Shown here: one piece after another, positions 4,977 through 55,017 of the stretch
How the letters are laid out: each line of letters opens with the position of its first letter
Numbering within the stretch: position 1 is the stretch's first letter
Assembly (NCBI GenBank): GCA_021613535.1
Contig: CP075494.1
Location: forward strand, 2,418,001 to 2,482,000
DNA length: 64,000 nucleotides
Direction: 5' to 3'
Source of the DNA: Adineta vaga
Taxonomy: Eukaryota; Animalia; Rotifera
Made by a program: the position numbers and the translations under genes
The notes under the pieces: generated by a model
Told to the model about the DNA's origin: nothing
What the model saw: the letters and a program-made list of their open reading frames with translations, nothing else
The model's database searches: none

Positions 4977-5978
4977 ATGTCTTCGAGTTCAACAGAAGCA
5001 TCTCTAATTGCAACTTTAGTTGCGATTACTACACAAATCAATCGTTATCTACCAATCGGTATTTTTTTCTTTGGTATAATTGGTAATCTTCTCAATTGTT
5101 TGACTCTTTCTCAACGAACACTTCTTTCTAATCCTTGTGCTTTATTATTTCTTGCATCATCTATTGCCAGTCTAATTACATTGATCGCTGGTGTTGGTGT
5201 TCGGTTCTTAACTGGATGGTCTGCTGATCTAACTGAAACGAATGATATTGTCTGCCAAATTCGTTTCTTCTTTTTATCTACCTCGAGAACTGTTGCATTC
5301 TGGTTGATTGTATTAGCTGTAATGGATCGATGGCTTTTATCGTCAATTAATGTTCATCGTCGACAATTGAGTACATTGAAAAATGCTCAACGAGGCATTA
5401 TTTTCATCATCATTCTCTCAAGTTTAGCATATGTTCAATACTTTTATTGTTTTGTAGCAATTCCTAAAGATATTTCATACACATGTTATGGCAGATCGAT
5501 ATTATGTCGATTAATTCACAATCTAGAATTTGCTTTGATTACCGTTCTTATTCCTTCTTTATTAACGATTATTTTTGGATTAATGACCATTTATAATGTT
5601 CATAAATCTGCTTTACGTCGAGTTCAGCCAAGTATCGCAATATCATCAATACAAAGAAATGTTGCCAACGGAAGATCAGCACGAATGAAGAAAATCGACC
5701 GTCAACTTCTTATCATGCTTTGTGTACAAACTACACTCGTAATTCTTTTTTCATTTCCTCAAGCTTCTCACAGTCTTTACATGATTATTACTCAACACGA
5801 TATTAAATCTCCACTTACGAATGCCATTAGTACTTTACTTCTCAATTTATTCATATTGTTTACTTATATGACCAATGGAATGCCATTTTATGTGTATACA
5901 TTAAGTGGTGGAACGATTTATCGTAAAGCACTTTTTCATAGACTACAAGAATTCTCTCAAATCATCCGTTGTCGATGA
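4977..5978 (+). CDS. Orphan class A (rhodopsin-like) GPCR, single exon
   Basis: 333 aa, 7 hydrophobic segments, GN in TM1, DRW at the DRY position, MPFYVY in TM7; clear paralogue of 49614..50630. Confidence 0.92.
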   Translation: MSSSSTEASLIATLVAITTQINRYLPIGIFFFGIIGNLLNCLTLSQRTLLSNPCALLFLASSIASLITLIAGVGVRFLTGWSADLTETNDIVCQIRFFFLSTSRTVAFWLIVLAVMDRWLLSSINVHRRQLSTLKNAQRGIIFIIILSSLAYVQYFYCFVAIPKDISYTCYGRSILCRLIHNLEFALITVLIPSLLTIIFGLMTIYNVHKSALRRVQPSIAISSIQRNVANGRSARMKKIDRQLLIMLCVQTTLVILFSFPQASHSLYMIITQHDIKSPLTNAISTLLLNLFILFTYMTNGMPFYVYTLSGGTIYRKALFHRLQEFSQIIRCR

Positions 5979-14205: not shown

Positions 14206-17200
14206 ATGCAATCCCTCACTGCTGCTGCTGATCGAATCCAGACATATTTTGCAGAATTGAACCTTTTTGAAGATGAGAGAACTCGTTTTGATCAATTTTA
14301 TTTACGAACTGCAATTATTTCCAGTCGAGTCTATATTGCTCTTCTCACACTCGCCGTTATCATTGTTATCGTATTCACTTCATTGGATACTCAATCAGAA
14401 GTTATCACCATTCGAAATCCATCTCAAGCATATTATCAAGCATTAATCAACAACAATTCAACCCAACTATCATGCCCATGCAGTCACATTACTATTCCAT
14501 ATGGTAACTTTAGTTCAACGACGGTCAACTATCATCCTGTATGTTCAAGCGTATTCGTCTCTGATGATTGGATCAATCATCTTTTCAGTTCTGACATTGG
14601 AAAGTTATATCAAGCTGATTTTCGTGTATTGGCTAGTAGTTATTTTCAACTACTTGCTGCATTATGTTCCCATGCCAACAGATCAGTTTATGATGCACTC
14701 GCTGATTTTGACTCAAAAACACTTCTCACTCCGGATGTTCTTTCACAGGACTTCTTCGATAATCACACTCAAGCGAAAAGTAAATTTCTGAAATTATCAA
14801 CAGAAAATGATCTTCTTCAACTGCTTGAACTAATACGCACCACTACCCATGCAAATGCACTACAAACAGCAATACAGACATCTACAATAATGAATATAAT
14901 AGGCAGCACCATCATTAGTGTAGATATCATTTTTCATCTTAATCTTACATTGCAATGTAGGTGCTCTTCAACACGTAACTGCTCTCTACCATCTGGTTTC
15001 TTTGATCTTCACAGGATAAAAACCAGACCTTTTTTCTTTTGGCAGCTACTGCCTATAGCCTATGTACCTGGATTTGTTGTCGGATGCTCCGCAGTCGAGT
15101 CCCTATTGCAGTCAACACTCGCGTGCTTGTTTGATTGGCCATGTCTCAAAACTATACACACATTTATTCCTTCTAGCAACATTACCGGTGTCTCTCCTCT
15201 TGACATGAATCAAACCCGATTCGCTCCGAACACATCCATTAAAACAATTATCGATAGTTTATTTATCGAAAATTGGACAACAGAACAATCATTTTCCAGT
15301 TATTATGAACAATGTGCTCCTATTCTGTGTTCTTACACATCAGTACAACACAATAATGTATTATATATAATAACCAAACTTTTGGGTTTATATGGTGGAC
15401 TGAGTGCCGCTCTTCGTCTGTGTATTCCACTTCTTATTGGAGGGTGGCGCAAAAGAAAACTCATCGCTGTGGCAGGGCCCCGTCTCAGTAAGTATCAGAA
15501 TCTTAAGAGTTCCCATCTTGTACTTCCAGAATATGCTTGACTTCTCATTGGCAAACTCTATTTCATTCTTTCTTCATTCAGAATACTGTTTATAAGTTGT
15601 TTGATAGAAATAACACTTGTTTTGTTTTTAGAATTGTACTAATATAGTTTTGTCTTTCAGTTGTTTCTCGTATGCGACGTGTTCAAGCAGTATGGCAATC
15701 GATACGAATCAAGGTAATAGAATTGAATCTCTTCAAGACTCGAACGATGTATACTGATCCTTTCGAACGTATTACTTTAAGAATTTCGACTTGGATCTAT
15801 CTTGTTCTTTTGTGCTTATCAATGATTATTATTATTCTTTTTACTTGGTTAAGTGTTCGAATACACCATGGGACTGTTGAGTATCCGTCAATAGCTACCT
15901 TCGAATGGTTACAAGAAAAGTATACAAGATCATTTCAATGTCCATGCAGTCAAATTGCTATTCCGCATTATTTGTTCATATCACTTTCTCCTCAATTTCA
16001 TCCGGTGTGTACAAGCGATTTTTTATCCGATCTGTGGTTTCAGTCCATTTCATCTGCGGGTTGGTTTCAATACATAGACAAAGTTGAAGACATCTTTATC
16101 AGTGGACATAAATACTTCAGGACTCTGTCAAGTTTGTGTGAGCTTATGAAAACAACTGTGTCAGACGCATCCTCTACTTTCAATCAGTCATCGTTAACCA
16201 CCGATCAGAGCTTATCCAATGTCGAATTCACGGCTCGCGCACGACAAGCATTCAATCAATTCATATTGAACACTGTGGCCGAAGTGAAACATAGTATTGC
16301 ATTAATTCGGTCTCAAATATCGACTATGTATACAACGGGACAGAGTGACGCCTTTTGGAAATTGTCTCCTTGGCGTAATAGTTCATATTCAATGTATTTT
16401 CAGGCAGCACCAAAACAATTCGGCAACTGTTCATGTGGCCTTAATGACGAATGTAAAATGTCAATGATCTTGTACAACTATACTAATTATTTGGATGTCG
16501 ATCCACTCAGGCCGATATTTGAAATTTCTAATATGTTTGTGAGTTGCTTTCCAATGCAATCGGTTCTTCAATCGTCATTGGAATGCATGTTTGACCAAAT
16601 ATGTTTGGGGCTTGTGTTAAAACAAATGAAGAATGTTAGTGAGGTAGCGCGTCAATTAAACATATCCATATTACAATGGAATTCGACACGGTTTTCTCCT
16701 AAGACACTTATTGAAGAAATGATTAATGAAATGATGATTGAGACATGGAATGAAAACATTAACTATAGTAAATATTATAAAAACTGTGCGCCCAAACTTT
16801 GTTCCTACTTTTATACATCACGAAGCGATGCAGTTTATGTATTTATTATAATGATCAGTTTGTTTGGTGGACTTTCAGATGTTCTGAGAATTACCGTTCC
16901 ACTTATCATTAACTGGATTCGAAAAAAGATGCGTGCAAGAGGTCAAATAGATAATACGTCACGTAAGTCAGCTTTAAATAAAACAGGTAGAATTTGTGAT
17001 CTTGAGGGTGGATGTGAGTGTGGGTAAATATGAATACAAGAGAACCTCATCCTCACATATACCCTCTCTCTTCAAATGAATCGCATTGTTCTTATAATAA
17101 AAGAGAATATCTGATATATTGACAGTCAAAGTATTTAAGAATAATATTGCTTGATGTGACAGGAAATATGAAAAATTGCGTATTATTCATTCCAGGTGCT

Positions 17201-18472
17201 TTCACACTCCGTGATCGTTTACATGGTCTCTGGCAATTGATTAAGGAGAAAGCAGTTGAGTTGAATTTGTTTGAGAGCGAAATATCATGGAATGATCCTC
17301 ATCGTCATCGTAAAGAAATTATTTCAACTCGCATCTATCTTTTTCTCCTTGTATTTTCTGTCATAATTCTTGTTGTTTATACTGGAATCTCCGTACAAAT
17401 ACAAACTTTCATAGTGGAATCTCCATCACAATCGATTTTCGAACAACTTATATCTAATCCAAAATATTCGTCTTCATTGGATTGTCCCTGTCAGAACATT
17501 TCTGTTTCATACGACTCATTCATATCCATCTCTCTACGCTATCATCAACTTTGTTCAAGTGATTTTGTTGTTAACAACTCTTTATGGATTAAACTCGTTT
17601 ATTCTGGATCAGACCTGATCGACCATGATTATGATGATTATCGTTTTTTTATCATCCCTCATTTTCGATTGCTTTTCTTCTTATGTACTCTAGCTAACGA
17701 CACATTTACTAATGCTTTATCAATTTTCCGTTCGAATACATACATCAGTAAACGAGCAGAATCGCGTCAAGTCGTTAACACTCAAATGCGAGCTATTCTC
17801 GATCAATTTCGATTATCGATACCACGAACATTTATGCGTAGACTCGACTTCATTCGACAGATGGCTCAAGGCAATGGATTACTTTCTCGAATTTCCTCTA
17901 ACTGGTATATAACACCATTGCAAATTGATGCTTTCGGAACGATGGCACCCAGATCATATAGGACCAAGGATTGTTCATGTGGTACAAGTGCTTTATGCAC
18001 ATCTTCGGCAACCATTGATAAATGGATTATACCTGGCTTTCTTGTCGGATGTTATCCACTCGAATCGCTTCTTCAATCGACTCTTGAATGTCTTTACAAT
18101 CTCACATGCATCAATAGACTAAAAAACATCACGAAATTTTCGAATATGACTTTCCGTCCTCTGAATTCCACCCTCTCATCTCTCAATGTTACTGTTCAAT
18201 CTCTTGTTGATGTACTCATGATTGATCAATGGGAATCAAATATCATCTATGAAAATTACTATACGATATGTGCAACTCTCTCATGTACTTATGTAACCAC
18301 TGAGCAGGTCAATACAATATATATAGTCACTACTATTATTGGTCTCTTTGGAGGATTGATTATTGCACTCAAAGTTATCGTTCCAATTCTTGTGACAATA
18401 ATGCAATATCTGAGCATGCGTCGTCGACGGCGAATTGAGCCAGTAATCACTGTGATTCTCGATGCTGAATGA
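14206..18472 (+). CDS. 1286-aa protein of three tandem homologous units, each TM1 - Cys-rich ectodomain - TM2; putative concatenated DEG/ENaC-like channel
   Basis: Exons 14206-15487, 15661-16962, 17196-18472 joined by phase-1 GT-AG introns (CTCA/gtaagt...tttcag/TTGTT; TCAC/gtaagt...ttccag/GTGCT); total 3861 nt, in frame. Each unit has ELNLF, IS(S/T)(R/W)(V/I)Y-TM1, CPC, (Y/F)HxxCxSxF, S(L/V)LQS(T/S)LxC, YYxxCAxxxCxY and TM2 with (G/S)L(Y/F)GGL(S/I). Gene structure is high confidence; the channel assignment is inference. Confidence 0.85.
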
Positions 18473-20051: not shown

Positions 20052-21282
20052 TGGTTGATGAATCTGAAATATGCATTTTATATTGAAGTGAAGAAAAATT
20101 CATTTCATAAAACACTCTCAACTCATGTTGTAATTCAAACGGTGAATATAAAGACAAACTAGATATTAATATCTTTGATAAAACATCCACTATCACTTCT
20201 ATTTGTTTCGACAACTGTACCGAGAAAAGAGTGATCGATTCTTTTTCTGAATATTAATCCGAATCAAACGTTTCGAATGTTTTATCATTTTACAGAATGT
20301 AACGAAAAATTATTGTTATCAGGACAATATTCTCGCTATAGACATTATGTAATGAAAAGTATATCTTTAGAATAGTTAACAATTTACAAACACTTACATT
20401 TACTCACTGTGTTAGATAAAATCTTGTGTATTGTTCACCAAAATGGTTCTAATGTTCTCACGTTATTGTATACATATATATATACACCATTAATATCAAT
20501 TTTCTTGTTTATCTGCAATTTTTTCATACGACCCCGCACTTTCCGTGAAATATCTATTTACCAATTCTTAATTACATGCATTTTTTTTCATGTACACCGT
20601 GTCCGGAAAACTATCAACCAAAAAATCATTTTAAATATCTTCTTCATATATTGATCAGATGAGTTGACATTTTTACGTATGATAAAAGTATTTCTAGAAT
20701 GTATATTCTAAAAGAAATCCTTTTGCTACATGCGAAAAGATAGAATTTTTCTATTGATATCTAACAAAAGATTTCTTTCTGGATATAAACTTTGAATATG
20801 ATTCTAGTATTGCTTACATTTCAGCATATTTGATCGACATATGAAGACGATATTCAAATGTTTTATTATGTTCAATGATTTTTCAAACACGCTGTATAAA
20901 CCTTATTATTGTCATTTAAAACATGTGAATACTCTTTGGTTGGTCATTTGATTTCTTGTAAAACTCTTCCTTTTTGAAAATTTATACTATGTTTTCTACT
21001 TTGAAAAATGATTACGTAATTAATTATTATACGAATAAAACATTATTGATCAATTCAATCGGAAATCTGGATATTCTTTAGAAGTAAAATTAAATTATTT
21101 ATTAACAAAATGAACAATTTTCCAGAATTTTTAAACTTGTAAAAGGAATGGAATGATTTAATCAAGAAAATGTTTGTCAAACAAGTCATAAAATCTAATG
21201 AATCAAATATTGCATTGATCGATGACTTTGAATGATTATATATTAAATGAATAAAAAGAAATACACGTCTTCTTTTGAAAAA

Positions 21283-24200
21283 ATGATTTTATTTCAGTTG
21301 ATTCTTATTTTAACTATTTCGTTAAATAATCATTTCAATTCTGGTGAATATAGTTTAAATGATCAACAATGTTTAGATTTTTATGCGAATGAACAATTTT
21401 TCGCAAATTTCTTTAAAACACCAAAGCATTTAGGACATCAAATCATTCCATTTTGTTTATCCGTTAATAATGATAATGATCCGTTTATGATTGAAGAAGA
21501 TATTCCATCATTTACATTTGATCAATTAATTGAACGGAATATAAGCAGTAATGATTTATATAAAATGGCAGCTCATTTGGATTTAATTGAAGAATATCAG
21601 CATATCAGGAAAATCGAAGTGAACTAATATCACGTTTTTATCATTGTGCTACGAAAGATCGATTTGGTTTATTTTGTGAATATTCTTTATTAAATTCGGT
21701 AAGTTTATTTCATTGATTCAGAGATGGTTTTATTTCTTTTAGAATTCTTTACAAACACCATTTGCTGAAATTGTGGTTAAGACGTTAAAAGAAAGTTCTA
21801 CTATACCGTTGAATGGTACTTGTTATGTTCATCTTGATTGTTATCGTGATGATTTTCTATGGTGTCTTGACTGGCGTGAAGTATGTGATGGAAAAGTTGA
21901 TTGTTGGCCAAATCCTATTGATGAACAATATTGTGATGAACTTGAACGTAATGAATGTGGTTCAGATGAATATCGATGCTTAAATGGGCAATGTATTCCA
22001 GAAAAGTTTTTATTAGATGCTTCGATTAGTTACGATTGCCTTGATATGACTGATGAGAATATGTTCGATGATCTTTTAATAGAAAGAAGCAATTGTAGAA
22101 TTGGTGATCCTTCTTTTCGATGTATAGACACAGCATATTCGAATTGGCAATTTCAACAAAATGACTTTAGTTTCTGCAGTAGTGGAATGTCTTGTTATCT
22201 GGAACGTAAAAATCAATTCCATATTAGTTTATTAAAACGTACTGCTAACACTCATATAAATGCTGATTGTTGGGTTACTATGATTTGTTTAGTACATTCA
22301 ATCAATACGGCTATTCCAGTAAGTCGTTTTTGAACTTATTATAATACAAGTCAATTATAACTATTCGAAAAATTCTATTAGTCTATTGATTTTGTTTCAT
22401 AGACACTAATTAGTTAGATGATGTAAAGAGTTTAGAAAAACGACACATTTCTCTTTAACTAAATTGATCTATTGAAATTTAGTTTGATTTGATTTATCAA
22501 GATTTATTTAATGGAACATGTGATAATATTTGTTTCGAACCCGATCATTCTTGTACTCCACGACTTCGTCAATATTGTCCAACATTATTTGAATTTCCTG
22601 CATCGTCTATCGGATGGAATCAGTTATATTTCATCTATTCATGGAATAGAACAGGTATAGGACTGTATCGACCAAATTATATTTGTTTTAATGAACATAG
22701 TTGTGGTATGCCAGAATCGAACATTAGCGTGACATTAAAAAGCAAACCTTCAATTAGACTGTCTTGTGAACATTCATCAAGTATAGTTAGTTTGACACAA
22801 ACCTGGTATGCACAGGCTGATCATTGCACAGGAATCATGCACAAGCAATGTTCCGTACAAAAGAATGGAAAACAAGGATATTGCCCTGAAGATACTCAGT
22901 TTCGATGTCACAATAAATGCTTGTCTAAACATCGACTAGCCAATACATTACTTGATTGTCGTGAAGGTTTTGACGAAAAATTTACAAATGGATGTGTTCT
23001 TAATGATAAACATCGTTTTCGATGTACATCTTTCTTAACTGAACAAATTAGTACACGATGCATAGTACCTATTTTTTTATTGACACACAACGGACAAATA
23101 CATTGCAATGAAGTAACTCGATTACCTCATTTTCCCACATTATGTGATAGTTATGTTGAACACAGAGAAAATATAAATGGACGTATGGAAACGGACGAAA
23201 TGTAATGTGAAGAATGGCCATGTAATAATCAATATACAAGATGTGATTCAATATGGAATTGTCGTAACGGAGAAGATGAAGCTCAGTGTTCTCAAGATGT
23301 TTGCAATGGAATCATTGGACATCCTTGTTTACTTCCAGATACATTAGAGTTTATTTGTCTGCCAATCAATCGTAGTAATGATGGAATAATTGATTGTCTT
23401 GGAGCAACAGATGAACCATATCTGTGTAAAAACTTGTATGAAGGTGGAACACGATATCGATGTTTGACAGATAACACAAACAATAAGTGAGTAATATCTA
23501 AACGTTTCCTCCTTATAGAAAATCGTTTCAATCTTCATTTGCTCTAGTCTATCAAAATGCATTTCAATGAATAACGTTTACGATGAATCATATGATTGTC
23601 CTCTAAAAGATGATCAATTACCCTCCATATGTAAAAATGATTTCAATTTGCCATATGTATGTGGACATTTTTTGACATTTTCTAGACAATTAACCAGTGA
23701 AAGTATACTGTGTAGTCTCGATGATTCTATCAAACTTTCTCTCCCAGCTATAACAGGTTTGCCACATTTTTCATTATCTTACTATAGTCTTCGTTTTCGG
23801 AGTCCGTTTTCAATTGGTTCCGCTTTATCTTCAATTAAAGAGGATTCACTTGAGATAACATCTGTAAAACAAATTCCTTCGAATCAGTCTCATTGTCATA
23901 GTGGTATACCAATTCATTTTCGAAATCATTTGAACTGTTTATGTCCACCGTCCTTATATGGTTCACAATGTCAATATCAAAATCAACGTATAAGTATTAT
24001 TTTACAAATCGGTGCTCCTGAATGGCGAACTCCATTTGTGTTTGTTATTTACCTTCTTGATAATAGAGATGGAACAATAAATTCCTATCATTCTATTCGA
24101 TATGTATCAACTCGTGATTGTAGTGCAAAATTTCGTTTTAATTTAATTTATTTAACAAAACCCAAATTATCCGATCGAACCTATTCAATTAGAATTGATC

Positions 24201-26518
24201 TTTTTGAAATGGAAACATTAAAATATCGAACAAGTTGGTTCTTTCTTATTCAATTTTCATTTTTACCCGTGTGTCGTCTCTCAACACAATTGGTTGTTCC
24301 ATTATTTACTTCTTCTATCGAAACTCATTGTCCAATTACATGTTCATCAATTCATGGAGAATGTTTAAAATTTATTAATACTAATCAATACTTTTGTTGA
24401 TGTCATTCCGGTTGGTTTGGATTGTCCTGTACAAATTTTCATCAATGCGATTGTTCATCTGATTCACTTTGTGTTGGTATTTGGAAGAATAAATCGATCT
24501 GTATATGTCCAACACAGAAATATGGTCGACGTTGTTATCTTAAGTATAATTCATGTGAAGAACGTGTTAGTGATCCATGTGTCAGGATCGCCATCTATTT
24601 ATAGTAGATGGACGATCCTTTCGTTTCTTGTGTTGTTTTTCTTTCTATTGGATTATACTTTATATATATGTTTTTTGTTTTTTGTTGTTGTTGTTGTTAT
24701 CTCTCTAATCTGAAATAAAGGTGGTCGAAGACCGAAACTTAAAAGGGTGTCGCTTTCTTCCTCTTCCCTTTTTTCGTCAACACTTTAGTTCGGATCCTAA
24801 CACCATGTGCATCGAATAGTTTATGCATTCCACGTGACTATCGTATAACCGTCGATCGTCCAAGTGTCTGTTTATGTGCGACGGGATATTATGGAGATCA
24901 ATGTCATTTAAATGAAACGCGAATCGATTTATTAATTTTAACTTCAGATGTTCCACAACTTTTACTTCTTCATTTTATTTATGTTGGTGATCGTATGGTA
25001 CAGAAACCATTTGGTGACGATCTTTCCCGGGGTCCACATGAACGTGCAACTGTATTCAAGAAAATTCCACCTAATCGTAATTTAATCACATTCTATTGGA
25101 GTAATTCATTTCATATTCTTTTCGGTGAATTTAACAAAAATATTTATTTAATTTTAACACAGTTAGAACATATTACATCAAAACGAATTAAAGGAACACT
25201 TCGATCTCATCGACGATGTTTATCAATCCATGAATTATTAAATAAAACAATATTAAATTTACCACGATTACGTCGTGTTAAATATTATCATAAACCATGT
25301 CGTGAACAAATTGATTTATCTTGTTTTTATGATGAAGTAGATTTTATGTGTCTTTGTACTTTTGATCGACGAGCAAATTGTTTTCAATATGAAAATCAAA
25401 TGATTTATAATTGTCGACAATTATCAATTTGTGAAAATGGTGGACAATGTTTTCAAGATCATCCAACATGTCCAACAGCAGCCTTATGTTCGTGTCAAAA
25501 ATGTTTCCTTGATACTCGTTGTCAAATTTCTACACGTAGTTTTGATTTAACACTTGATATTATTCTTGGATATCAAATACAATCTGATTTATCATTTCTT
25601 AATCAATTAAAATCAGTTCAAATTAGTTTTGCTATTACAATTGTCATGTTTATCATTGGCTTTATCAATGGAATTCTATGTTTGATCGTTTTTCGACGAA
25701 AAAAACTTCGTGATATTAGTTCTGGTCTTTATTTATATATTGCTTCAATAATATCTCTTTTAACAATAACAATATTTGCTTTAAAACTTCTTTTAGTCAT
25801 GATAATTCAATTTAATTTCATAAGAAATCGAATATTTCTCAAATTTCAATGTTGGATTATTGATTTTATTTTAAAAGGATCATTACAAATTAGTGAATGG
25901 TTATATTCATGTGTTATGGAGTTGAAAGATTAATTTCAGTTTATTTTGGTTATAGTTTTAATAAAAAACGAAGTATTCAAATTGCAAAAAAAGATTATTC
26001 TTTGTTTATCAATATTTGTTTTATTGAGTTCAATTCATGAACCAATTCATCGAATTCTTATTGAAGATGAAGAAGATAAACGTTTTTGGTGTACAATTGA
26101 ATCTTCTCAATTTCTTCATATATTTAGTTCAATCATAACTATTTTTCATGTTATTAGTCCTTTTATTATGAATATTTTATCAACAATTGGTTTTATTATT
26201 CTTGAATCAAGAAGAAGATCACAAAATCAACAAATTCTTTCTTCTAATCATACTCTTCGTGATCATTTTAATCAATTTAAATATTTAATTTTAAGTCCAA
26301 TTGGTTTAATTCTTTTAGCTTTACCTCGTATTATTTTCATTTTTACTCTTGAATGTTTAAAATCATCACATGATTCAATAACATTATTTTTAATTGGTTA
26401 TTTCGTTTCATTTTTATCACCAGTCATTTCTTTTATTATTTTTGTTTTACCTTTGAAAGGATCTCGAACAGAAGTTAAAATTTTATCAAAATCATTTAGA
26501 AAATTCTTTCGATGTTAA
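21283..26518 (+). pseudogene. LDL-receptor class A repeat / EGF / class A 7TM receptor, pseudogenised
   Basis: Signal peptide MILFQLILILTISL; LDLa repeats (CLDWREVCDGKVDC, CGSDEYRCLNGQCIP...DCLDMTDE); several EGF modules; C-terminal 7TM (FIIGFINGILCLIVF...). Lesions: frameshift near 21600, TAA 23203-23205, TGA 24398-24400, solo-LTR insertion 24580-24802, frameshifts at about 25915-25990. Confidence 0.85.
24580..24802. mobile_element. Solo LTR (223 bp) with 5-bp target site duplication
   Basis: Begins TGTCAGGATC, ends GATCCTAACA (TG...CA, 9/10 inverted match); CCATG on both sides (24575-24579 and 24803-24807); internal AATAAA; removal restores the EGF reading frame DPCASNSLCIP...CLCATGYYGDQC. 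Confidence 0.9.
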
Positions 26519-29715: not shown

Positions 29716-32295
29716 TCATTTATTGCTTGATTTTAAAAACTCGATATTAGTTTGAATATTTTCAATAATTGGATGATTAAAAGGTAATAAAATTTTGAAA
29801 ATATCTAAAGCACGTTGATAAAATAATAATGATATTGTAAAGTTATTCATATTTCTGTAAATCCAAGCAATACTATTATAAGAAGAAGCCAAATCAGGAT
29901 GATTCGATGGCAATGTTTTTTCCAAAATATTTAAAGTTTTTTCATAGAAGAACAGTGATTTGGAATAGTCAGTCATATTGAAATACACTTTACTCATATT
30001 ATTGTAAATTGTAATTAAAAACGGATGATTTTCCGGAAGTATATTCTCGAAAATATCACACGTTTTATGATAAAATGATAATGCTTTTGTATATTCGCCC
30101 ATATCATCATAGACCGAACCAATATTATTATAAGAAGATGCTGAATGAGGATGATTTTCAGGTAGAGTTTCTCGACAGATAACAAGTGCTTTTTCGTAGA
30201 ATAAAATCGCATTTGTATAATCTTTCATCTTATAATATGTTAAACCAATATTATTATAAGATTGAGCAAAATCCGAATGATTTAAAGGTAAAACTTTTTG
30301 TCTGATTTCCAAAGCTTTTTCATGATATGAAAGTGCATCGGAATACTTTTCCATTTTATGATAAATCATTCCAATGTTATTTAATGACGTTGCTAACAAT
30401 GGATGATTTGCAGGTAAACTTTTTTCATAAATTTTTAATGTTTTTTCATAAAATAAAAGTGCTTTGGAATATTCACCGATATTACTATATACTCCACCGA
30501 TATTATTATAAGATGATGCGAGATCAGGATGATTTTGTGGAAGTGTTTTTTCAAAGATTTCAATTACTTTTTCATAAAATAAATGTGCTTTGGAATAATC
30601 TCCTATATTTTGATAAACCAAACCGATATTATTGTAAGATTGAACAAGATCTGGAGAAAATATTTTCTCTCGAATTTCTAAAGCTTTTTCATAAAATGAA
30701 ATAGCTTTGAAATATTCTCCCATTTTATCATAGACAGAACCAATATTATTGTAAGATGTAGCAAGATCAGGATGATTAGATGAAAGAGTTCTTTCGATGA
30801 TTCCATTTGCCTTTTCATAATACCAAATAGCTTTTTTCCAATCACTTTCATGTTGTTTAATATAACCAAGTTCATTGAAATAAAGAGCTTTATCATTTTC
30901 ATCCGATGTTTTTTGTTCAAGTAAAACATTATAAAGTTCTTCAGCTTTATTATATTGACCAATTTTAAGTAATAAACAACTTAATCTTCTCCAATTTGTT
31001 GTACCAATAATTTCTTCTCTTATACGTTTAGTAAGTAAACGAAGTTGTTCATCATTATCATTAGTTAATTGTAAATTAACTTGATAAAGTCGTTTTGTTT
31101 TATCGAGTTGTTCAATTTGACCAATACGAAAAATTGTATGCATTGAAAAAAGAATTTCTTCTTCTGTTTCAAAATAACTATTTTCTCGAATCGAAGCAAA
31201 TGGTGAAGAAATAATCGATGGATCAATTGTCATAACAAAGAGTATACCAGTCGTATTTGTTTTACTTGAAGCATTTTGTGCAAAACTAAGAGAAATCTCT
31301 CGATCATTACTCGTTGATAAGAAATTATTGAAAGATAATAATCCACCTTTTGTTTTAAAAAGTTTATCAAAATCATTATTTAATAAACCTTGTCCACGAT
31401 AAACTAAAAATGTTTTATTATTATAAGTATTTAATTGTTTTTTATGTAATTGTTCAATTTGTAAATGTAAATCATGAATAAAAAATCCCATATTAATTAT
31501 TTTATCAGCTTCTAATAGTCGAAGTGCTCGATTGAGCATTTGATAAGTAAAACATTCTCGTGTATACCACCAAATAGCTTGTTCAGGACAATAATTACGT
31601 TCAAATTCATTGATTATTTTCAATTCTTCTTTATTATCAGAATATAATTTTCGACAATAATTTGCTAAATCTTTGATTTCTTGTTTCTTATGTTTCATTT
31701 CCAAAAGAATTTCTTTAAAAATTTGTGTATACATAAAACTTGCTTCTAATTCATTTGATTTCTCATCATTTGTTATGACAAAACTCATTGGAATAGAATT
31801 TTGATTAGTTTCTTTCATAACTAATTTTAATCTTTCACAAAGAGATTTTATTTCTGTAAAAACACCTTGAATTTTGTTCCATTGTTTTGTCCATTGTTCA
31901 TGTCGAGATTTATTTCTACAAAGAATATAAATCGAATCTAATTGTATTAATGAATGAATATCTGATATGAGATATTGTCCTAGATAACCTGTAGTAATAA
32001 CAAAAGTTTTTTCGTCTCTAATTTCATTGAGAAATTGAACACATTGTGTTGGTTCTGTAAAAATTTCGATATTGTTAATTACACTTTTCAATTGTTCGAA
32101 TATATTTTGATAATCTTTGTCTGTTTTATCAAAACATGAATCGAGCCAAATTAATAAACAATTTTGAGTAAGACGTCGATTTAAATAAATAACATCAGAT
32201 GAGACGATTAATGAACTGTAAATTGTATCAGAACTATAAATGATGATGATTTTGATTGAATAATAGAACAAAACATACGTTTACTTTGAATTCAT
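29716..32295 (-). CDS. ADP-ribosyltransferase (R-S-E class) - TPR repeat protein with an N-terminal receiver-like domain
   Basis: VYRGQG...SFNNFLSTS...ETEEEILF catalytic motifs; roughly nine 42-aa TPRs (HPDLAxSYNNIG). Probable start ATG 32295 (MNSN) spliced through a ~50-nt GT-AG intron into the 851-aa track ORF. Confidence 0.9.
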
Positions 32296-35344: not shown

Positions 35345-35951
35345 CTATGTTTTTTTCATTCACATTTTTGTTTGACTTTATTACCAAATACAGGATATTT
35401 TGTTCAATGTAAATTTTTGGAGTAGAATATTAAAATCATCAGAAAGATCCAACATACAATGGTATCTAAATTCATGGGACTCCCATCTGCTGTCTCACCC
35501 TCGGTTTGGATGCATTAGATGTTTCATTTTACGAGCATCCGAACGCGTTTAAACGCACAAAGTTTTCGAGACCATAAAATATTTAGCATAATAAAGAGTT
35601 CGTTCTTTTCAGGTAAAGTCTTTCTTTATGCCTATTCATTTTTCGATTTTAATATAATTCATTTCATTCATTGGAATAACGTCGGAAATAGGTTTACATA
35701 AGAACTGTTGTAAAACTTCTTTCCATCGATTCATTCGAGAAAAAAAGTACTTCAAGTTGCTAATTGCACGGTTTTTATGAGAAGTTTTTAATTATATTCA
35801 TGATATTTGCTTTTTTTTAGATAAACCGACAGAAAGAAACATTTTAATTTGAAAAACATTCCTGTGATCTCAAATGAGAGAAAAAAGAATAGAAAATTCT
35901 ACACGCACATACGTCAAACTTTATGACAGATAAAGTTCACATTTGAAAAAA

Positions 35952-36950
35952 ATGTCATCTTTGGGAATAACAATCAATTCCCTAAATACAATAGGAACAA
36001 TAATTAATGTAACGGTTTCAAGTATTAATATTATCATCGGTTTAATTGGTCTTTTATTGAATATGATTATTTTTATTCAACCATCATTACGTAATGAACC
36101 ATGTTCAATGTATTTCTTATCATCAACATGTTTTAATTTATTTGTTATCATTGTTGTGATACCTGTTCGTATTTTGTCAAGTGCTTTTAATATCGATTTG
36201 GCTAATTATAATCTTGGAATTTGTAAAATAGAATTTTTCTCATTTTATTGCATACGAACAATTTCATGTTGGTTAATTATCTTAGCATGTATGGATCGTT
36301 ATTTACATAGTTCAAGAGAAACATCTATTCGTCGATTAAGTTCATTGAAAACAGCTAAATGGTCAATTGGAATAATCATTGTTGGAATAACTCTCTTATA
36401 CAGTCATATGATCATTTATTATGAAATAACAAATGTATCTAATCAATTTGGTAATATAGAACCAGTTTGTAATTCTCAAAAGGGTTTGTATCGTACATTG
36501 ATTTCGTTTTGGTACATGATTTTATATTCATTATGTCCATCTTTATTAATGTTTATCTTTGGATGTTTAACATTAAATAATATTCGTGATCGTCGTCAAG
36601 TACTTCCGATAACTTCAACATTGAACCAAATCGTTCGACGCAAAGAAGCTCAATTATTACGTATGTTGATTGGTCAAGTGTTTGTCGTTGTTATTTCTAC
36701 ATTTCCATTCTTTATCTATCGATTGTATGCAGCGTTAACAGCTAATTTAGTTAAGGATACACTTCGAATTGCTCAAGAAAATTTCGCTTTTCAATGCGTA
36801 GGTATTTTGACTTATTTTGCTCATTCAAGTAGTTTTTATATGTTTACATTAACGGGATCAATTTTTCGAAAAGAACTGAACAAGATCATTCGACATTATT
36901 TTCCTAAGAATACAAAAGCATTAGAAACAAATCAGCAAAATCTACAATAG
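35952..36950 (+). CDS. Orphan class A GPCR, single exon
   Basis: 7 hydrophobic segments, LACMDRY motif, SSFYMF in TM7; first ATG at 35952. Confidence 0.92.
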   Translation: MSSLGITINSLNTIGTIINVTVSSINIIIGLIGLLLNMIIFIQPSLRNEPCSMYFLSSTCFNLFVIIVVIPVRILSSAFNIDLANYNLGICKIEFFSFYCIRTISCWLIILACMDRYLHSSRETSIRRLSSLKTAKWSIGIIIVGITLLYSHMIIYYEITNVSNQFGNIEPVCNSQKGLYRTLISFWYMILYSLCPSLLMFIFGCLTLNNIRDRRQVLPITSTLNQIVRRKEAQLLRMLIGQVFVVVISTFPFFIYRLYAALTANLVKDTLRIAQENFAFQCVGILTYFAHSSSFYMFTLTGSIFRKELNKIIRHYFPKNTKALETNQQNLQ

Positions 36951-40900: not shown

Positions 40901-43751
40901 CAGATGGAATGTAAAGATCATTGTTTGAGAAATCAATTTGTTTATCGAATTTCGTTTCATAAATACAGGAGAACGAACAACTAAGAATTTTCCATTCGAT
41001 TAAAATTGATTCTGATTGTTTACATTGATTTTCAATATTTGAACTAATATAAAAATATTGATTATGTCGAAATTTCAATTTCATTCCAGATGGAACAAGT
41101 TGAATAATAGGTGGATTACAATCTTTAAAAAAAATGAATAGGTAAGTTTTTCATTTGAGAGAATTCTCAATAGTATTCTTAACTTATTAGTTTCTTTCAG
41201 TTATGAACTGTTACTAATACTTACTACAATTATTCTTTGCAAAGAAATTTTTGAATCGGAAATTCTGTTCATCAGCAACATACAAATTTCCAGAACTATC
41301 AAAACGAACAGAATATGCCAAAGAAAGTTGATCTGATGCCGATCCCGATATTCCTGTACAACCAACAATACAACGATATTCACTCTTTCTCACTTGAATA
41401 ATACGATGCTTTCGATTATCTGCAATGTATAAGAAACCATCACCGTCCAATATCACATCAGTTGGATAATCTAATATTAGACCATTAGGAAAATTATTTC
41501 CTGCTACTGGTCTTCCATTCATTTCTCCTCGTCGAAAACATTGAATTCGGTTATTTTTCGCATCAGCCACATACAAATCAAAATGAATATCAACGAATAT
41601 TCCCCAAGGTCCATTCAATTGATTTGATTGTGATCCTTGAGAACCAGTTCCTGCTATTCTCATAATTGTTTGATTATTACCATCTAATAACATTTTCTCT
41701 ACTTGATGTTTATCTCGCATGGAACAATAAAGATAATTTTGAATATCGATAAAAAGACCAAAACAGTTTTCTGTGAAGTTGGTCACGAATTGACTCTGTG
41801 TTGAGTTCGGTGTAATTTTATCGATCTGACCTGTTCGATTTCCATTTGCAAAATAAATATCACCATTTAATGTAACAAATAAAGTTGTGTAATCATATAA
41901 TTTTGCATTTAATCGTCGTTGCGGAATGATACTCTGGCCTGAGAAAATGAGAATTTGATTTTTTGAATAATCAGATAAATAAATATTATCTTTGTAATCG
42001 ATAAAAATACCACGAGCTTGGGAGCTTAAACTGTTATTATCAATAAAAGTGATAGCACATTGACTCCACTTTGCGTTTACAATAAGTTTTGGTTGATTAT
42101 TTGAAACTAGAAAAGCAGCATAGAATAGAAAAGATTTCGCATACTAAAGACTGAAGAGTTATGGAACGATAAAAGTTTACAACTGTTCATCGGAGAAATA
42201 TTGGGTTGAGCTCGATAATTAATAGAATTATATAACTTTGAAGTGAGATGACAACATCTAAATTCTGATTTGTTCGTCTATTGAGAAACTTTAGAGGGGG
42301 TTTCTATAAAAAAAAGAGATGTCGAGCGCGAAAGCATTATATTAGAGATTACTAGCACTGCTCATTCGGTATAGTACGGATACTTTTCTTTGAAATCTGG
42401 TACTAAAATAGGCGACAGTTTCTCTTAAAGTCAGGCTACAATTATGTTCTTTAGAACTATTCTTAACATATCATGATTCGTGCGAAATGATCAATTTTTC
42501 GAAAAATAGTGTTTAGAATAAACTAAATCTTCCAAGATCTTAGTTTATAGATAATCTAATATCGAAATAGCGCATTGTGTAGAATAGTTTTTGTTTTAAC
42601 AATTTACATAAAAATCATTAAATTAAATTTTAGTTCTGAACCAAAATAATTCGTTCGAATAAAAAAATGCGCAGCGAAATATTTTTCAAAGTAATTGTTT
42701 TTCTTCGTAAATGTTCTCTAATGACTTGTAAATGAATAAATAATTTGTCGAAAAACTTTTTAACCACTTGTTACAGATAATTAAGTTACTTTTTGATCAT
42801 ATCATAATAAATCAACTTAATACTCAGCAGGGTAGTTCAGAAGTTCAAACTTTTGTATTCGATGATTTCCCTGATCACTAACATAAAGCGAACCAGAACG
42901 ATCGAATGACAAAGATCGAGGCTCTTTCAGTTGAGTTGATTGAACACCTGCTTCTCCTGAACATGCAACAATACATATCCCCAAACTTGAATTAGGAGAC
43001 CATCGTGTCACACGTGAATTTCCATATTCAACAATATACATATACTCATTTTCATCAACAATGATATCTATTGGTGAATTCAGTTGTGTTGATTTACTGC
43101 CTGGTGTACCATCACCAGCCACACGAATTCCAGATGATGCTCCTGATAACCATTTCATGATTCGATGGTTTCCACAATCTGCTATATAAATCACTCCAAC
43201 ATCCTTTACAAATATTCCATATGGTTCATTTAGATGTTGATTGGTTGATCCAAGAAATCCATTGCCGGCCACTCTTGAACCAGTTGATGAATTCGATCGA
43301 AAAACAAATACACTGTGAGAAACGTAACTACTCGCATATATATCTCCATTATTATCGATATAGAAATGTGTTGGGCTTAGTAATCCAGTTATGTGAGACA
43401 ATGTAGTTGGATTTGAACCATTTAGTGACATTTTCTGAACTCGTGGAATGATCAGTTCAAGAACATAGAGTGATGAATTCAAGATGAAAACATCAGATGG
43501 TTGACTGAGTCCAACGAGATTAGTCCCTTGTCCCGAACCGATAGCGAAAGTAGCGATAGAAGAGTCAAGATGAACGATAATTATACGATTATTATATGTA
43601 TCACAAATGTACAGAACATCCTTATCTGTGATTGTTATTCCTCTAGGGTGATGAAGCTCAGAGAGAGATGATCCTGATTGTCCATTTTTGGATCCTATAA
43701 CTGTTATTCCATTTTGATTCCAAGATGCTTGAGATGATAGTTTTAATTTCA
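37926..43751 (-). CDS. Multi-exon NHL-repeat (two beta-propellers) + REJ-like + GAIN/GPS protein, ending at the GPS site; may be damaged
   Basis: NHL exons 43751-42828 and 42106-41225; downstream exons with REJ-like sequence (LVFNPGEYSYDLD, NNGPKNGFCSINPLNG...FTINCTNWFD) and GPS motif CFYFDKNNQWKSDGLLVGPLTNHYQTQCFSTHL*. The 5' signal-peptide exon was not located; the donor after the first NHL exon reads CT instead of GT. Confidence 0.75.
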
Positions 43752-46700
43752 CTGAAACATAAAAAGTTTCAATAAAATTTTCTATCGTTATCAGAAAAGA
43801 TAAAGCTCCAGATTTAATCGTGGTCTTCTAGAGATATTTGAGACAAAACGATGGAAAATGATTTATAATGAACTGCAAGTGAAAGAAACTTATTCAGAAT
43901 TCGATCTTTTGTATCAGAACAAGGAATCGAGTTCTTTGAACGTATTCTATAACTTTAACATAACGAAATAGAATAACTTCGAGAAAGATTTTATATTCTA
44001 TTTAATCTAAGAAAATATCATTTATCGTCAAGATACAATGTAATATATTGATTGAAATCTTTAGAATTACTTGCAGATCCATAATTGATGAACCGAATGA
44101 TCATCCAAAGAACGAAATAATAAAATAATTCCATTTGAAAATATTTTCTTTTACAATATCTTCCGCCAATTTTATTTTGTTAAAATAATATTGTCGATGA
44201 TTATTTTTCTCTTTTTTTGATAAATAAATTTTATTAATAATCGTGACAATCAGAATTGAACGTGTTTTTTCTTCATAATTAAAAACTAACATATTTTTGC
44301 AAATATAATATCAATTTACAAAGTTTATTTTCTATATCAAAATTTCTGCACGAACACAGTTCTCAATAAGAGTCTGGGAAAAAACAACTAAATTGTTCGA
44401 TTAAATATTACTTATGAAATATCGCAATGAGCATTTATGTTAATACTTGATACTTTTATTTCTTGACAAAATGAAATTTTCTTTTTTTTTCGATAAGATC
44501 TTTAAGTTAATAGAATTTAATTAATTTTGTTTATACGAAAAATTTTCTAAATAGGATTGAAATCTGATTATCATATGTGAATTTATTTTTAAAAAAATAT
44601 TAGTTTTATGTAAAAGAAGAACATGTATAGAGGATAGAATAACAATCGGATAGAGACAGAGAAAAACACATTCTCGGATGATTTTTAGTGAGTTAATTGT
44701 TCTTTAGAGAAAAACATTTATGAAATGGCAATGAAATATTTTATTTTCATGATATTAATCAATGGAATATCAAGTAAATATTAAAAGATTTCGTGTAGAA
44801 AAGATAAAACAATATAAAATATTTAGTATGAAAATTTTTAATATTTTTCATTCAAATTTATATAAACATCAGAAAATAAGACATTTTTATTGGAAATTTT
44901 TCAATTTGATAATTCTTAAAGATAGTTTTTACCCCAGAATATGAATTTATTATTTATTAAAACGAAAATTCAATTATTCTTTTATTTTGAAATGTTAGTG
45001 AATTGTTTCAAATTAGTATGTCATATCAAATAGAATACATAAATTTTACTTTTATTAGAATCATTGAATGAAAACTATGATAATTTTACCATTTTTGCAG
45101 TGAAATTAAAATTATCATCTCAAGCATCTTGGAATCAAAATGGAATAACAGTTATAGGATCCAAAAATGGACAATCAGGATCATCTCTCTCTGAGCTTCA
45201 TCACCCTAGAGGAATAACAATCACAGATAAGGATGTTCTGTACATTTGTGATACATATAATAATCGTATAATTGTCGTTCATCTTGACTCTTCTATCGCT
45301 ACTTTCGCTATCGGTTCGGGACAAGGGACTAATCTCGTTGGACTCAGTCAACCATCTGATGTTTTCATCTTGAATTCATCACTCTATGTTCTTCAACTGA
45401 TCATTCCACGAGTTCAGAAAATGTCACTAAATGGTTCAAATCCAACTACATTGTCTCACATAACTGGATTACTAAGCCCAACACATTTCTATATCGATAA
45501 TAATGGAGATATATATGCGAGTAGTTACGTTTCTCACAGTGTATTTGTTTTTCGATCGAATTCATCAACTGGTTCAAGAGTGGCCGGCAATGGATTTCTT
45601 GGATTAACCAATCAACAACTAAATGAACCATATGGAATATTTGTAAAGGATGTTGGAGTGATTTATATAGCAGATTATAGAAACCATCGAATCATGAAAT
45701 GGTTATCAGGAGCATCATCTGGAATTCGTGTGGCTGGTGATGGTACACCAGGCAGTAAATCAACACAACTGAATTCACCAATAGATATCATTGTTGATGA
45801 AAATGAGTATATGTATATTGTTGAATATGGAAATTCACGTGTGACACGATGGTCTCCTAATTCAAGTTCGGGAATATGTATTGTTGCATGTTCAGGAGAA
45901 GCAGGTGTTCGATCAACTCAACTGAAAGAGCCTCGATCTTTGTCATTCGATCGTTCTGGTTCGCTGTATGTTAGTGATCAGGGAAATCATCGAATACAAA
46001 AGTTTGAACTTCTGAACTACCCTGGTGAGTATTGAGCTTTTTTTTTTGCTAATCAATAATATCTTCATGAGTTGAATTCATAATTAAATGAAATGGGAGA
46101 CAACAAACATAAGTAAAACTTTCTCTTGTCACTAAAGAAAATTGTATTTACTATAATAACTAACAGTTGTTTTATCATTCAGATGAATGTTCTTAATCAT
46201 TTTCTAAATCATTAGTATAGGGTTCGTATATCTTCATTATATTGTTTTCTGTCAAACTACGCAAAAATAAGTTCATTAACAAAGCACTGATTTTATTTTG
46301 TACATCGTATTCATATTTAGTTTCAAATAATCAACCAAAACTTATTGTAAACGCAAAGTGGAGTCAATGTGCTATCACTCTTATTGATAATAACAGGTTA
46401 AGCTCCGAAGCTCCTGGTATTTTTATCGATTACAAAGATAATATTTATTTGTCTGATTATTCAAAAAATCAAATTCTCATTTTCTCAAATCAAAGTATCA
46501 TTTCAGAACAACGATTAAATGCAATAATATTTAACTGTACAACTTTATATGTTACATTAAATGGTGATATTTATTTTGCAAATGGAAATCGAACAGGTCA
46601 GATCGATAAAATTACACCGAACTCAACACAGAGTCAATTCGTGACCAACTTCACAGAAAACTGTTTTGGTCTTTTTATTGATATTCAAAATTATCTTTAT

Positions 46701-49613: not shown

Positions 49614-50630
49614 TTAATTACGTCGAAATGTAATGTTTCGAATCAATGTGTTGATAAAACTAAACAATGTTTGTCGATACACTTGTCCTCCACTTAATGT
49701 ATAAATATAGAAGGGCATTCCAGATGCAATAAAGATAAAAAGAAGAAATAAATTAAAGATAAAGTTTTCAATAGTATTTTGTAATGTTGATTTCACATTA
49801 TTTCTTGTTATTGTTGAATAAAGCTTCGAAATCGATAGCGGAAAAGTGAATACGAGAAGAACCAGAACTTGAACAAACAGCATTATTAATAAATGACGAT
49901 CCATTTTTCTTTGTTGAGCCTGATGTACACTACTAATTGTTGTCGTATGCTGAGCAGCAAGACTGTCAACTGTAATCGATGTTTGTTGTACACGAGCTCG
50001 TGACTGACGTATATTTGATATGATCATTAGACCAAATATTAACATAAGACACAATGGAGATAGAATAGTAATCAAAGCAAAGCATAAATCTGATATAATA
50101 GCACATATTACTGTTTTTGAATAACATTTTAATGGGGTATTAGTAAGATTAGCTTCAAAACAAATGAATTGTTGTATTTGAATAAGAGATGATAGAATAA
50201 TAATGATAATTGCACCACGTTGAGCATTCTTCAAAGTACTCATTCGTCGTCGGTTAGCATTGATACTTGAAGAAAGCCATCGATCAATTGTAGCAAGTAG
50301 AATTAACCAAAATGCAATAGTAGTCGAGTCGAAAACAACAAAGGCTCGAAATTTACAAAGAAATTGATTTGTATTTGTTAGATCAGCTTCCCATGTAGAT
50401 AAAAATCGTGAAATAATACCAGAAAGAATAGTAATTAGAAAGGAAATTGATGAAATGAGAAAAAGCCATGTACAAGGATTTAAACGAAGAGGTTTCCGTG
50501 AAAGAACGAGAATATTACAAATATTTCCAATGAATCCAAAAAGAAGGATAAAAATTGCAAAATAACGATTGATTTCAGTAGAAATAATATTTAATACAGC
50601 GATAAGATCTGTGTCTGATGACGATGACAT
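49614..50630 (-). CDS. Orphan class A GPCR, single exon; paralogue of 4977..5978
   Basis: 338 aa, GN in TM1, DRWL, MPFYIYTLSGG; shares MSSSS, INRY, ADLT, STLKNAQRG with the 4977 gene. Confidence 0.92.
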   Translation of the reverse strand: MSSSSDTDLIAVLNIISTEINRYFAIFILLFGFIGNICNILVLSRKPLRLNPCTWLFLISSISFLITILSGIISRFLSTWEADLTNTNQFLCKFRAFVVFDSTTIAFWLILLATIDRWLSSSINANRRRMSTLKNAQRGAIIIIILSSLIQIQQFICFEANLTNTPLKCYSKTVICAIISDLCFALITILSPLCLMLIFGLMIISNIRQSRARVQQTSITVDSLAAQHTTTISSVHQAQQRKMDRHLLIMLFVQVLVLLVFTFPLSISKLYSTITRNNVKSTLQNTIENFIFNLFLLFIFIASGMPFYIYTLSGGQVYRQTLFSFINTLIRNITFRRN

Positions 50631-52803: not shown

Positions 52804-55017
52804 ATGGATGAAAAAATCACAGTGACAAAAGATGACAGAATCGATAGTACAACGAAAGCAGAATCACAATCTACTATATCCATAAATGCAGTTACACGTC
52901 GACGGGCTAACGTCAAAATGTTCCAAAATGTCCTTCTGATCTCATTAGAAAAAAACATTGACGAAAGCAGCAGTGATTATCAATATATGATTAGTCAACT
53001 GCAGTGTATAATCGATGATCTGATTACATTTACTGATGACGAAGAGTGTCTTGAATATGTCAAAACTATGAACGATACCAAGGTTTGCATGATTATTCCA
53101 AGTTCTCTAGCACAAAGTAGTGCACCTCGTATGCATATGATGTCCCAAGTGTGCTCTATATTTATCTTTTGTAACAGTATACAAAGCTACGAACAATGGA
53201 TAAAAGATTGGCCCAAAATTAAAGGTATCTTCACCAGCATCACATCGCTTTATGAAGCTCTTAAACAGGTTGCTCGACAATGTGAACAGAATGCGATTTC
53301 AATCAGCATCGTATCCACCAGTGATGATATGACCAAGACCAATTTTGAGCAACTTGATTCGTCATTTATCTACACACAGATTCTCAAAGAAATAGTACTC
53401 ACAATTAAATTTGAAACACAGCATATTAATGACTTTATTGAATATTGCCGGAATCAGTTCAGTCGTACCAATAACAAAGCTCAATTAAAAAGCGTAACAG
53501 AACTAGAAGAAAAATATCGTGATAAAACACCCATATGGTGGTACACTAACCAATGTTTCTTGTATCCGATGTTGAATAGCGCTCTACGATTTATGGATCT
53601 TGAGTATCTCATTAAAATGAGTTTCTTTATCCGTGATTTACATCAACACATCGAACAACTCCACAAAGAGCAATTTGGTGATCATCATTCCAATGATATT
53701 TTTACAGTATACCGTGGTCAAGGATTAGGCAAAGAAGAATTGGAGAAGATCACAAAAGCCAAAAATGGACTCATTTCATTTAATAATTTTTTATCTACTA
53801 GTTACAAGCTAGACGTAGCAAACATGATGGCTGAGAGTAACCAAAATAATCCCGATTTAGTCGGAATTTTGTTTGCCATAACAATCGACCCTTCAAAGTC
53901 ATCGACTCCATTTGCATCAATCAAGCATGTCAGTCAGTTTCGAGAAGAAGATGAAGTACTTTTTTCAATGCATACAGTATTTCGAATTGGTAATATTACA
54001 TTCATCGCTGAAAATCTCTTCCAAGTAGATCTGACGCTGACCGATGACAGCAACAAAGATCTTCGTTTGCTTATGGATCGTATACGAGACGAGACTTATA
54101 CTGAAGAAACAGGTTGGTATCGCCTAGGCTCGCTATTACTGAAAATGGGTGAATCCGATCAGGCCGAACAAGTATATGAAACCCTTCTTTTACAGACGAC
54201 AAATGATATCGAAAACGGACGTATCTATCATCGGCTTGGATTAGTCAAATATAACCAAGGTAAGTATAGAGAAGCACTTAGACTCTATAAAAAAGCACTT
54301 GAAATTCGACAACAATCACTTCCTTCAAATCATCCTGATATGGCTAATACTTATAACAATATCGGTTTGGTATATAAGAATGTGTATGACTATGTGAGAG
54401 CACTCTCGTCTCATGAAAAAGCTCTTGAAATTCAACAACAATCACTTTCTGAGAATCACCCTCACATAGCTTCGTCATATGCTAACATTGGTAATGTGTA
54501 TTACAACATGCACAAATATAGGAAAGCACTTCCATATCACGAAAAAGCACTTGCCATTAAACAGCAATCACTCCCTTCTAATCATCCTGACTTGGGTTCT
54601 TCATATAGTGGTATCGGTAATGTGTATCACCATCTAGGCGCATATTTAAAAGCAATTTCGTTTCATGAAAAAGCACTTCAAATTCAAGAACAATCGCTTC
54701 CCCCAAATCATCCGGCTTTAGCTTCTTCCTACAACAACATCGGCAATGTTTATTGTGATATGGGCGAATATTTAAAAGCACTTTCGTTCTGTGAAAAAGC
54801 ACTTGCAATCAGACAACATTCATTATCTCCAAAACATCCGCATTTGGCTTCCTCTTACAGCAACATCGGTTCCATATATGAACACATGGGTGAATATTTG
54901 AAAGCTCGATCATTTTATGAACGGGCGATTGACTATGGAGAACGATCATTACTATCAAATCATCCTACGATGCAACAGAGACGAAAGAATCTTGACAGAG
55001 TAAGGAAGAAATTATAA
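52804..55017 (+). CDS. ADP-ribosyltransferase (R-S-E class) - TPR repeat protein with an N-terminal receiver-like domain
   Basis: 737 aa; VYRGQG...SFNNFLSTS...REEDEVLF; about six TPRs (HPxLASSYNNIG); paralogue of 29716..32295. Confidence 0.92.
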   Translation: MDEKITVTKDDRIDSTTKAESQSTISINAVTRRRANVKMFQNVLLISLEKNIDESSSDYQYMISQLQCIIDDLITFTDDEECLEYVKTMNDTKVCMIIPSSLAQSSAPRMHMMSQVCSIFIFCNSIQSYEQWIKDWPKIKGIFTSITSLYEALKQVARQCEQNAISISIVSTSDDMTKTNFEQLDSSFIYTQILKEIVLTIKFETQHINDFIEYCRNQFSRTNNKAQLKSVTELEEKYRDKTPIWWYTNQCFLYPMLNSALRFMDLEYLIKMSFFIRDLHQHIEQLHKEQFGDHHSNDIFTVYRGQGLGKEELEKITKAKNGLISFNNFLSTSYKLDVANMMAESNQNNPDLVGILFAITIDPSKSSTPFASIKHVSQFREEDEVLFSMHTVFRIGNITFIAENLFQVDLTLTDDSNKDLRLLMDRIRDETYTEETGWYRLGSLLLKMGESDQAEQVYETLLLQTTNDIENGRIYHRLGLVKYNQGKYREALRLYKKALEIRQQSLPSNHPDMANTYNNIGLVYKNVYDYVRALSSHEKALEIQQQSLSENHPHIASSYANIGNVYYNMHKYRKALPYHEKALAIKQQSLPSNHPDLGSSYSGIGNVYHHLGAYLKAISFHEKALQIQEQSLPPNHPALASSYNNIGNVYCDMGEYLKALSFCEKALAIRQHSLSPKHPHLASSYSNIGSIYEHMGEYLKARSFYERAIDYGERSLLSNHPTMQQRRKNLDRVRKKL

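Follow-up and report, generated by a model that had tools for sequence, protein, structure and literature searches.

A three-exon bdelloid gene for a three-repeat, six-helix membrane protein and its possible role as a single-chain pseudo-trimeric channel

A 64,000-nucleotide stretch of the Adineta vaga genome (contig CP075494.1, positions 2,418,001 to 2,482,000; here called the window) holds, at positions 14206-18472 of its plus strand, a three-exon gene with an open frame of 1286 amino acids (aa) and a single terminal stop, as established by a check of splice sites and frame in the DNA. Judged from its sequence, the gene is real and an intact member of a family of three-repeat proteins with six transmembrane (TM) helices, and by the tests run this family is not DEG/ENaC, PAC or P2X. 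The family is very large, bdelloid and apparently undescribed, and its novelty would lie in the predicted fold together with the architecture. By analogy with other trimeric channels of two TM helices per subunit (2-TM), the protein may be a single-chain pseudo-trimeric ligand-gated channel with an unmatched fold, a reading to which we give even chances.

Gene structure and three units on one chain

An initial annotation of the window had proposed that three open reading frames (ORFs), starting at 14206, 15672 and 17147, are exons of one gene, whose two phase 1 introns lie in the linkers between the repeats and splice in frame. The DNA bears this out: the three ORFs were verified, two GTAAGT-AG introns of 173 and 233 nt with pyrimidine-rich acceptors join them into the 1286-aa frame, and an intronless paralogue with three units exists. 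The observed three-exon structure is confirmed as real at the DNA level and has the following features.

14206..15487, plus strand: exon 1, unit 1, with N-terminal tail carrying an NLF motif, TM1, ectodomain with 12 Cys, TM2 and start of the linker
14329..14385, plus strand: hydrophobic core of TM1 of unit 1, aa 42-60 (helix 30-60 in the model)
15358..15438, plus strand: TM2 of unit 1, aa 385-411, with G394, G397, G398, S400 and R404 on the small/polar face
15488..15660, plus strand: intron 1, 173 nt, phase 1, GTAAGT...TTTCAG, predicted from the DNA; the NCBI model shares the acceptor
15661..16962, plus strand: exon 2, unit 2, 1302 nt, symmetric phase 1-1, with TM1 at ~15801-15857 and TM2 at ~16830-16910
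16963..17195, plus strand: intron 2, 233 nt, phase 1, GTAAGT...TTCCAG, predicted from the DNA
17196..18472, plus strand: exon 3, unit 3, ending at the TGA stop, with TM1 at ~17339-17395 and TM2 at ~18311-18391, and without a donor after TM2

NCBI annotates I4U23_022526 (751 aa) here, a model that likewise places the units in one protein and has both acceptors in common with ours, yet differs in its splicing within the exons: introns are removed from open exons, TM2 of units 1 and 2 is lost, and the model is probably a mis-annotation. The A. vaga genome used comprises 100.8 Mb in six contigs. Searches were run exon by exon, and the joined 1286-aa chain was used for the reading-frame check only.

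Relatives of the gene also carry several units on one chain. An intronless ORF of 1256 aa with all three units lies in the same genome (L011:3944-7714, at G000:C2 ~1,012,944-1,016,714) and is convenient for cloning directly from genomic DNA; two units share a single ORF in L012-L015 and L030, and metagenome contigs (L040/L041) hold a further intronless three-unit ORF, P0075, of 1228 aa. The L011 ORF is adjoined on the opposite strand by an apparently broken unit with a stop and a frame change. The neighbours of P0075 are lytic polysaccharide monooxygenase (LPMO), lipase, FAD-binding and Fringe-like genes on a contig of 31-36% GC, and its host is plausibly a bdelloid. At the junctions called by script in this gene and its paralogues, the best splice pair was phase 1 throughout (30/30); seven other junctions have no intron, and in the remaining seven, which were not called, inspection turned up candidate donors and acceptors, likewise of phase 1. 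Downstream of TM2, a phase-1 donor is present in 17/19 units at the first position, in 17/19 at the second and in only 1/19 at the third.

The alternative that the locus consists of three tandem single-unit genes, which are initiated separately and whose products trimerise after translation, would fit the in-frame ATG that precedes the NLF motif in each of the three window ORFs, as well as two AATAAA hexamers in intron 2 (16977 and 17096). The count of these hexamers is, however, at chance level, and a nearby Met is absent in 13/38 second or third units. Three separate genes were rejected on the intronless two- and three-unit ORFs and on the conservation of donors after the first two units but not the third, and we hold this arrangement to be very improbable.

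The count of units per chain points to a limit. Same-strand runs of units never exceed three in the 20 genomic loci fetched, and the 150 best homologues carry three units in 114 cases, two in 30, one in 6 and four in none, so that proteins of two or four units are not the rule. Since the ranking by score favours multi-unit proteins, the absence of four units is the more telling part of this count and the rarity of single units the less so. Some of the short homologues are visibly partial models, and the single-unit metagenome matches that were checked are exons carrying donors. Three units as a ceiling across the family is supported by these sequence counts.

Unit architecture and comparison with known trimeric channels

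By hydropathy, each exon encodes one unit of ~430 aa with two main hydrophobic segments, which gives six TM helices over the whole protein. The order given in the initial annotation, N-terminal tail, TM1, Cys-rich ectodomain and TM2, was found in every unit; the same 12 ectodomain cysteines are common to all three, which are pairwise 30-31% identical, and the units have an invariant N-L-F motif at the pre-TM1 site and 8-11 N-glycosylation sequons each. Linkers are short (~75 aa from the Gly-Gly of TM2 to the next TM1), and ~30 aa remain after the last TM2. From the basic residues after TM2 and the sequons, we infer cytoplasmic termini and linkers.

The AlphaFold2 (AF2) model of a single unit reached a predicted local distance difference test score (pLDDT) of 93.6 and has two helices of 32-36 residues, a few long strands, and a beta strand immediately after TM1 and another immediately before TM2. 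For the three-unit fold, the natural paralogue P0066 (P0066:8-1207) stood in for the protein of this gene; its model has a pLDDT of 87.9 and a predicted template modelling score (pTM) of 0.81, and because of the latter the three units are predicted to pack in a fixed arrangement. This confident predicted fold matches no solved structure. Foldseek searches of the PDB and of viral structures with both models gave no match with E<0.14, VIA gave nothing significant, with alignments spanning ~60-70 residues only, and a sequence search of the PDB returned nothing significant; Pfam gave no match for the three exons or for 100 family units. Neither Foldseek nor VIA gave an ectodomain match for the palm/beta-ball/thumb/finger fold with whole-model queries, no query being made with the ectodomain only.

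The units had at first been assigned to the DEG/ENaC/ASIC channels (PF00858), which they resemble in unit length (~430 aa), two TM helices, cytoplasmic ends, a Cys-rich ectodomain, a glycine-rich TM2 and, as predicted for the family, a probable trimer. They differ in their Cys pattern, in a long-helix ectodomain and in having three units per chain. A genome search with PF00858 leads to dozens of genuine DEG/ENaC genes elsewhere (69 exon-level matches) but not to this locus. When 100 family units were compared with 24 DEG/ENaC proteins by HHalign, the probability was 0.9% over 13 columns, and the sole aligned stretch sets the Gly-Gly of the family over 'IGGQ' of TM2 of bdelloid ENaC. The His-Gly (HG) motif before TM1, which is a criterion for DEG/ENaC (PMC7308080), occurs in 3/195 family units versus 19/24 control ENaCs, and the FPAVT motif after TM1 in 0/195 versus 21/24.

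The TM2 motifs GLYGGLS, SLFGGLS and GLFGGLI had been read correctly; the asymmetric G-x-S filter (S,S,I) derived from them does not stand. The G-x-S belt after the GGxxGL segment is not kept across the 195 units (Ser in 21% and Ser/Thr in 48% at the proposed filter site), and an alternative register of TM2 has G-x-S in 0/195. The site varies freely (T, V, I, S, N) and gives 48 different triplets among 65 genes, S,S,I being found once. Unit 1 does resemble the filter stretch of ENaC, but the family as a whole does not keep this likeness. As neither Pfam nor HHalign, Foldseek or VIA gave a match, and as HG, FPAVT and G-x-S are not kept, DEG/ENaC membership was rejected, and the caveat attached to the original assignment, that of a separate 2-TM family, was the correct reading.

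P2X channels (PF00864) are likewise 2-TM trimers with a disulfide-rich ectodomain. The 38 matches to PF00864 belong to about ten genuine P2X genes elsewhere in the genome and do not include this locus; the three exons and 100 units had no match to PF00864, and no match to the P2X fold was found.

TM2 is conserved across the 195 units at a small residue (97%), two glycines (88% and 96%) and an R/K (75%), which share one helical face with two upstream threonines; the polarity periodicity peaks at 103-105 degrees (no shuffle control). A basic residue at the first Gly +7, defined by sequence register only, is present in all three units of 30/65 genes, including this one, which has Arg, Arg and Lys in units 1-3. 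In PAC (TMEM206), the TM2 helices cross at the pore-facing G312, and K319 is the anion filter (PMC7904269, PMC6663466). The TM2 Gly with a basic residue at the +7 spacing of PAC is offered as a two-residue analogy and not as homology. The three exons and 100 units had no match to PF15122, VIA aligned 68/259 residues with PAC, which is within noise, without recovering the 12-stranded beta domain, and PAC assembles as a homotrimer from separate chains.

PAC has the core of ENaC without sequence similarity (PMC7904269), and a failed sequence match is for this reason not decisive by itself against an extremely diverged, concatenated member of the DEG/ENaC-PAC superfamily (or of P2X) with a rebuilt ectodomain. 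Consistent with such a member are the same topology, the beta strands right after TM1 and right before TM2, and the Gly-Gly aligned to 'IGGQ'. It is made improbable by the combined results of HHalign, Foldseek and VIA, by a model of two long helices and a few long strands instead of a 12-stranded beta domain, and by the absence of three motifs that are present in the control set. The nearest named Atlas clusters, ERGIC/Erv41-46 and the ciliate Y80K_N 2-TM proteins (feature score 0.78, TM-score 0.29-0.31), score below the level that indicates kinship and serve as leads only.

A variable family and a candidate mechanism

Between 1,128 and 1,341 candidate unit matches were found in the A. vaga genome; each search scored ~100 of them, and every one scored had E<1e-80. 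Among the matches listed of 2,992, the named ones are all bdelloid (Adineta, Rotaria), and the Atlas clusters of the family are mostly Rotifera. A pattern search of 185,579 prokaryotic genomes, which is sensitive to fairly close relatives only, gave no relative, and no description of the family was found in the part of the literature covered.

A quick version of the tree separates two clades. In that of this gene (L016-L019, L026 and L027), units cluster by position, which suggests an old triplication with specialised positions. The exon triplication of the initial annotation agrees with this clustering and with the phase 1-1 exons; the gene is, however, no one-off but belongs to a very large family. 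In the other clade (L011-L013, L020-L025 and L028), units cluster by gene, and all genes still carry three. Here, units from the same gene match each other unevenly along the DNA, in mosaic fashion: identity often reaches 93-100% across ~300 nt of N-terminal tail, TM1 and stalk but is 30-65% in the head. Between genes, TM1/stalk identity is 63-75%. This pattern appears to be intragenic gene conversion, with assembly collapse as the alternative.

Heads are the most variable part of the family units. In this gene they are 14-20% identical between units, compared to 36-46% for the TM segments, and the strong divergence of the ectodomains noted earlier is real. The ratio of nonsynonymous to synonymous substitutions (dN/dS) in a small sample of eight close pairs was ~0.9 in the head (not above 1) and 0.35-0.6 in most other segments. 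In about 20 homologues, unit 3 is followed by one more TM helix, the seventh, and by an FG-GAP propeller on the extracellular side (three-unit examples are P0009, P0019, P0052, P0061, P0079 and P0113), and NHL is also present once. In P0014, the FG-GAP part precedes the units, and in P0368 a partial unit is fused to kelch-type repeats.

Single-chain pseudo-multimeric channels are known from Nav/Cav, with four repeats, and from TPC and K2P, with two. As in these, subunits are fused in one chain and repeats are specialised by position; the fold is unrelated, and here there are three 2-TM repeats. The literature searched contained no description of a natural 2-TM channel with three repeats. The earlier idea of a natural trimer concatemer keeps its architectural part (one chain, the three-unit ceiling, a confident joint fold and, in the clade of this gene, position-specialised units) and loses the DEG/ENaC identity.

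In our model, the product would be a plasma-membrane protein of three homologous 2-TM modules with short cytoplasmic linkers, and the three units very probably close into a pseudo-three-fold ring. A central path would be lined by the three TM2 helices, which would cross one another at the Gly-Gly; a ligand bound at the variable distal heads would act through a disulfide-locked beta stalk to open this path, as in other trimeric 2-TM channels. If the path conducts, our guess is that it passes anions rather than sodium, because of the Arg/Arg/Lys ring seven residues past the first TM2 glycine. Since the subunits are joined, stoichiometry and order are fixed, and paralogues in one animal cannot mix randomly; each gene would encode a whole receptor, whose three binding faces differ. 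The broader proposal, which we advance tentatively and at somewhat less than even chances, is that ligand-gated ion channels of the trimer type include, next to DEG/ENaC-PAC and P2X, a further and independent class. In it, natural single-chain pseudo-trimers with an unsolved ectodomain fold would form hundreds of bdelloid chemosensory or immune receptors, whose heads would vary while intragenic gene conversion keeps their constant membrane cores similar.

The same single-chain pseudo-trimer may instead be non-conducting and serve as a variable recognition receptor, an adhesion or cuticle-surface protein, or a carrier of small molecules or lipids, the Gly-Gly merely packing helices. The huge repertoire, the hypervariable heads and the mosaic gene conversion resemble recognition-receptor families, and the fusions to FG-GAP, NHL and kelch-type propellers, the absence of a known filter motif and the dense sequons point the same way. 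On the other hand, a signalling domain would not fit into the short cytoplasmic parts, the basic residue and polar stripe of TM2 are conserved, and a limit of three units, strictly kept, suggests that there is a central axis. We regard a non-conducting protein as a serious possibility, albeit a rather doubtful one.

If the single-chain channel does conduct, it would represent a new ion-channel superfamily and a natural counterpart of the concatemers built by hand by channel biophysicists, and the subunit order fixed by the gene would allow asymmetric gating and selectivity in a trimer to be tested position by position. Even if it does not, the genes form a very large uncharacterised bdelloid family with a confident predicted fold unlike solved structures, and the pattern of constant core and variable head points to an undescribed sensory or defence system.

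Other genes of the window

Two ORFs, at 29716-32271 on the minus strand and 52804-55017 on the plus strand, encode an ADP-ribosyltransferase (ART) domain followed by TPR repeats. An ORF with AMP-binding and phosphopantetheine-carrier domains (59706-62606, plus strand) is followed by a hexapeptide-repeat ORF (62729-63850, plus strand); the pair is NRPS-like (non-ribosomal peptide synthetase) and possibly of foreign origin. Three single-exon ORFs resemble G protein-coupled receptors of the 7tm_1 type (4977-5978, 35943-36950 and 49614-50630), and two further ORFs contain NHL repeats (42817-43752 and 45064-46035). The Cys-rich multi-exon gene at 21247-26518 has, by eye, the look of an LDLa/EGF-type receptor.
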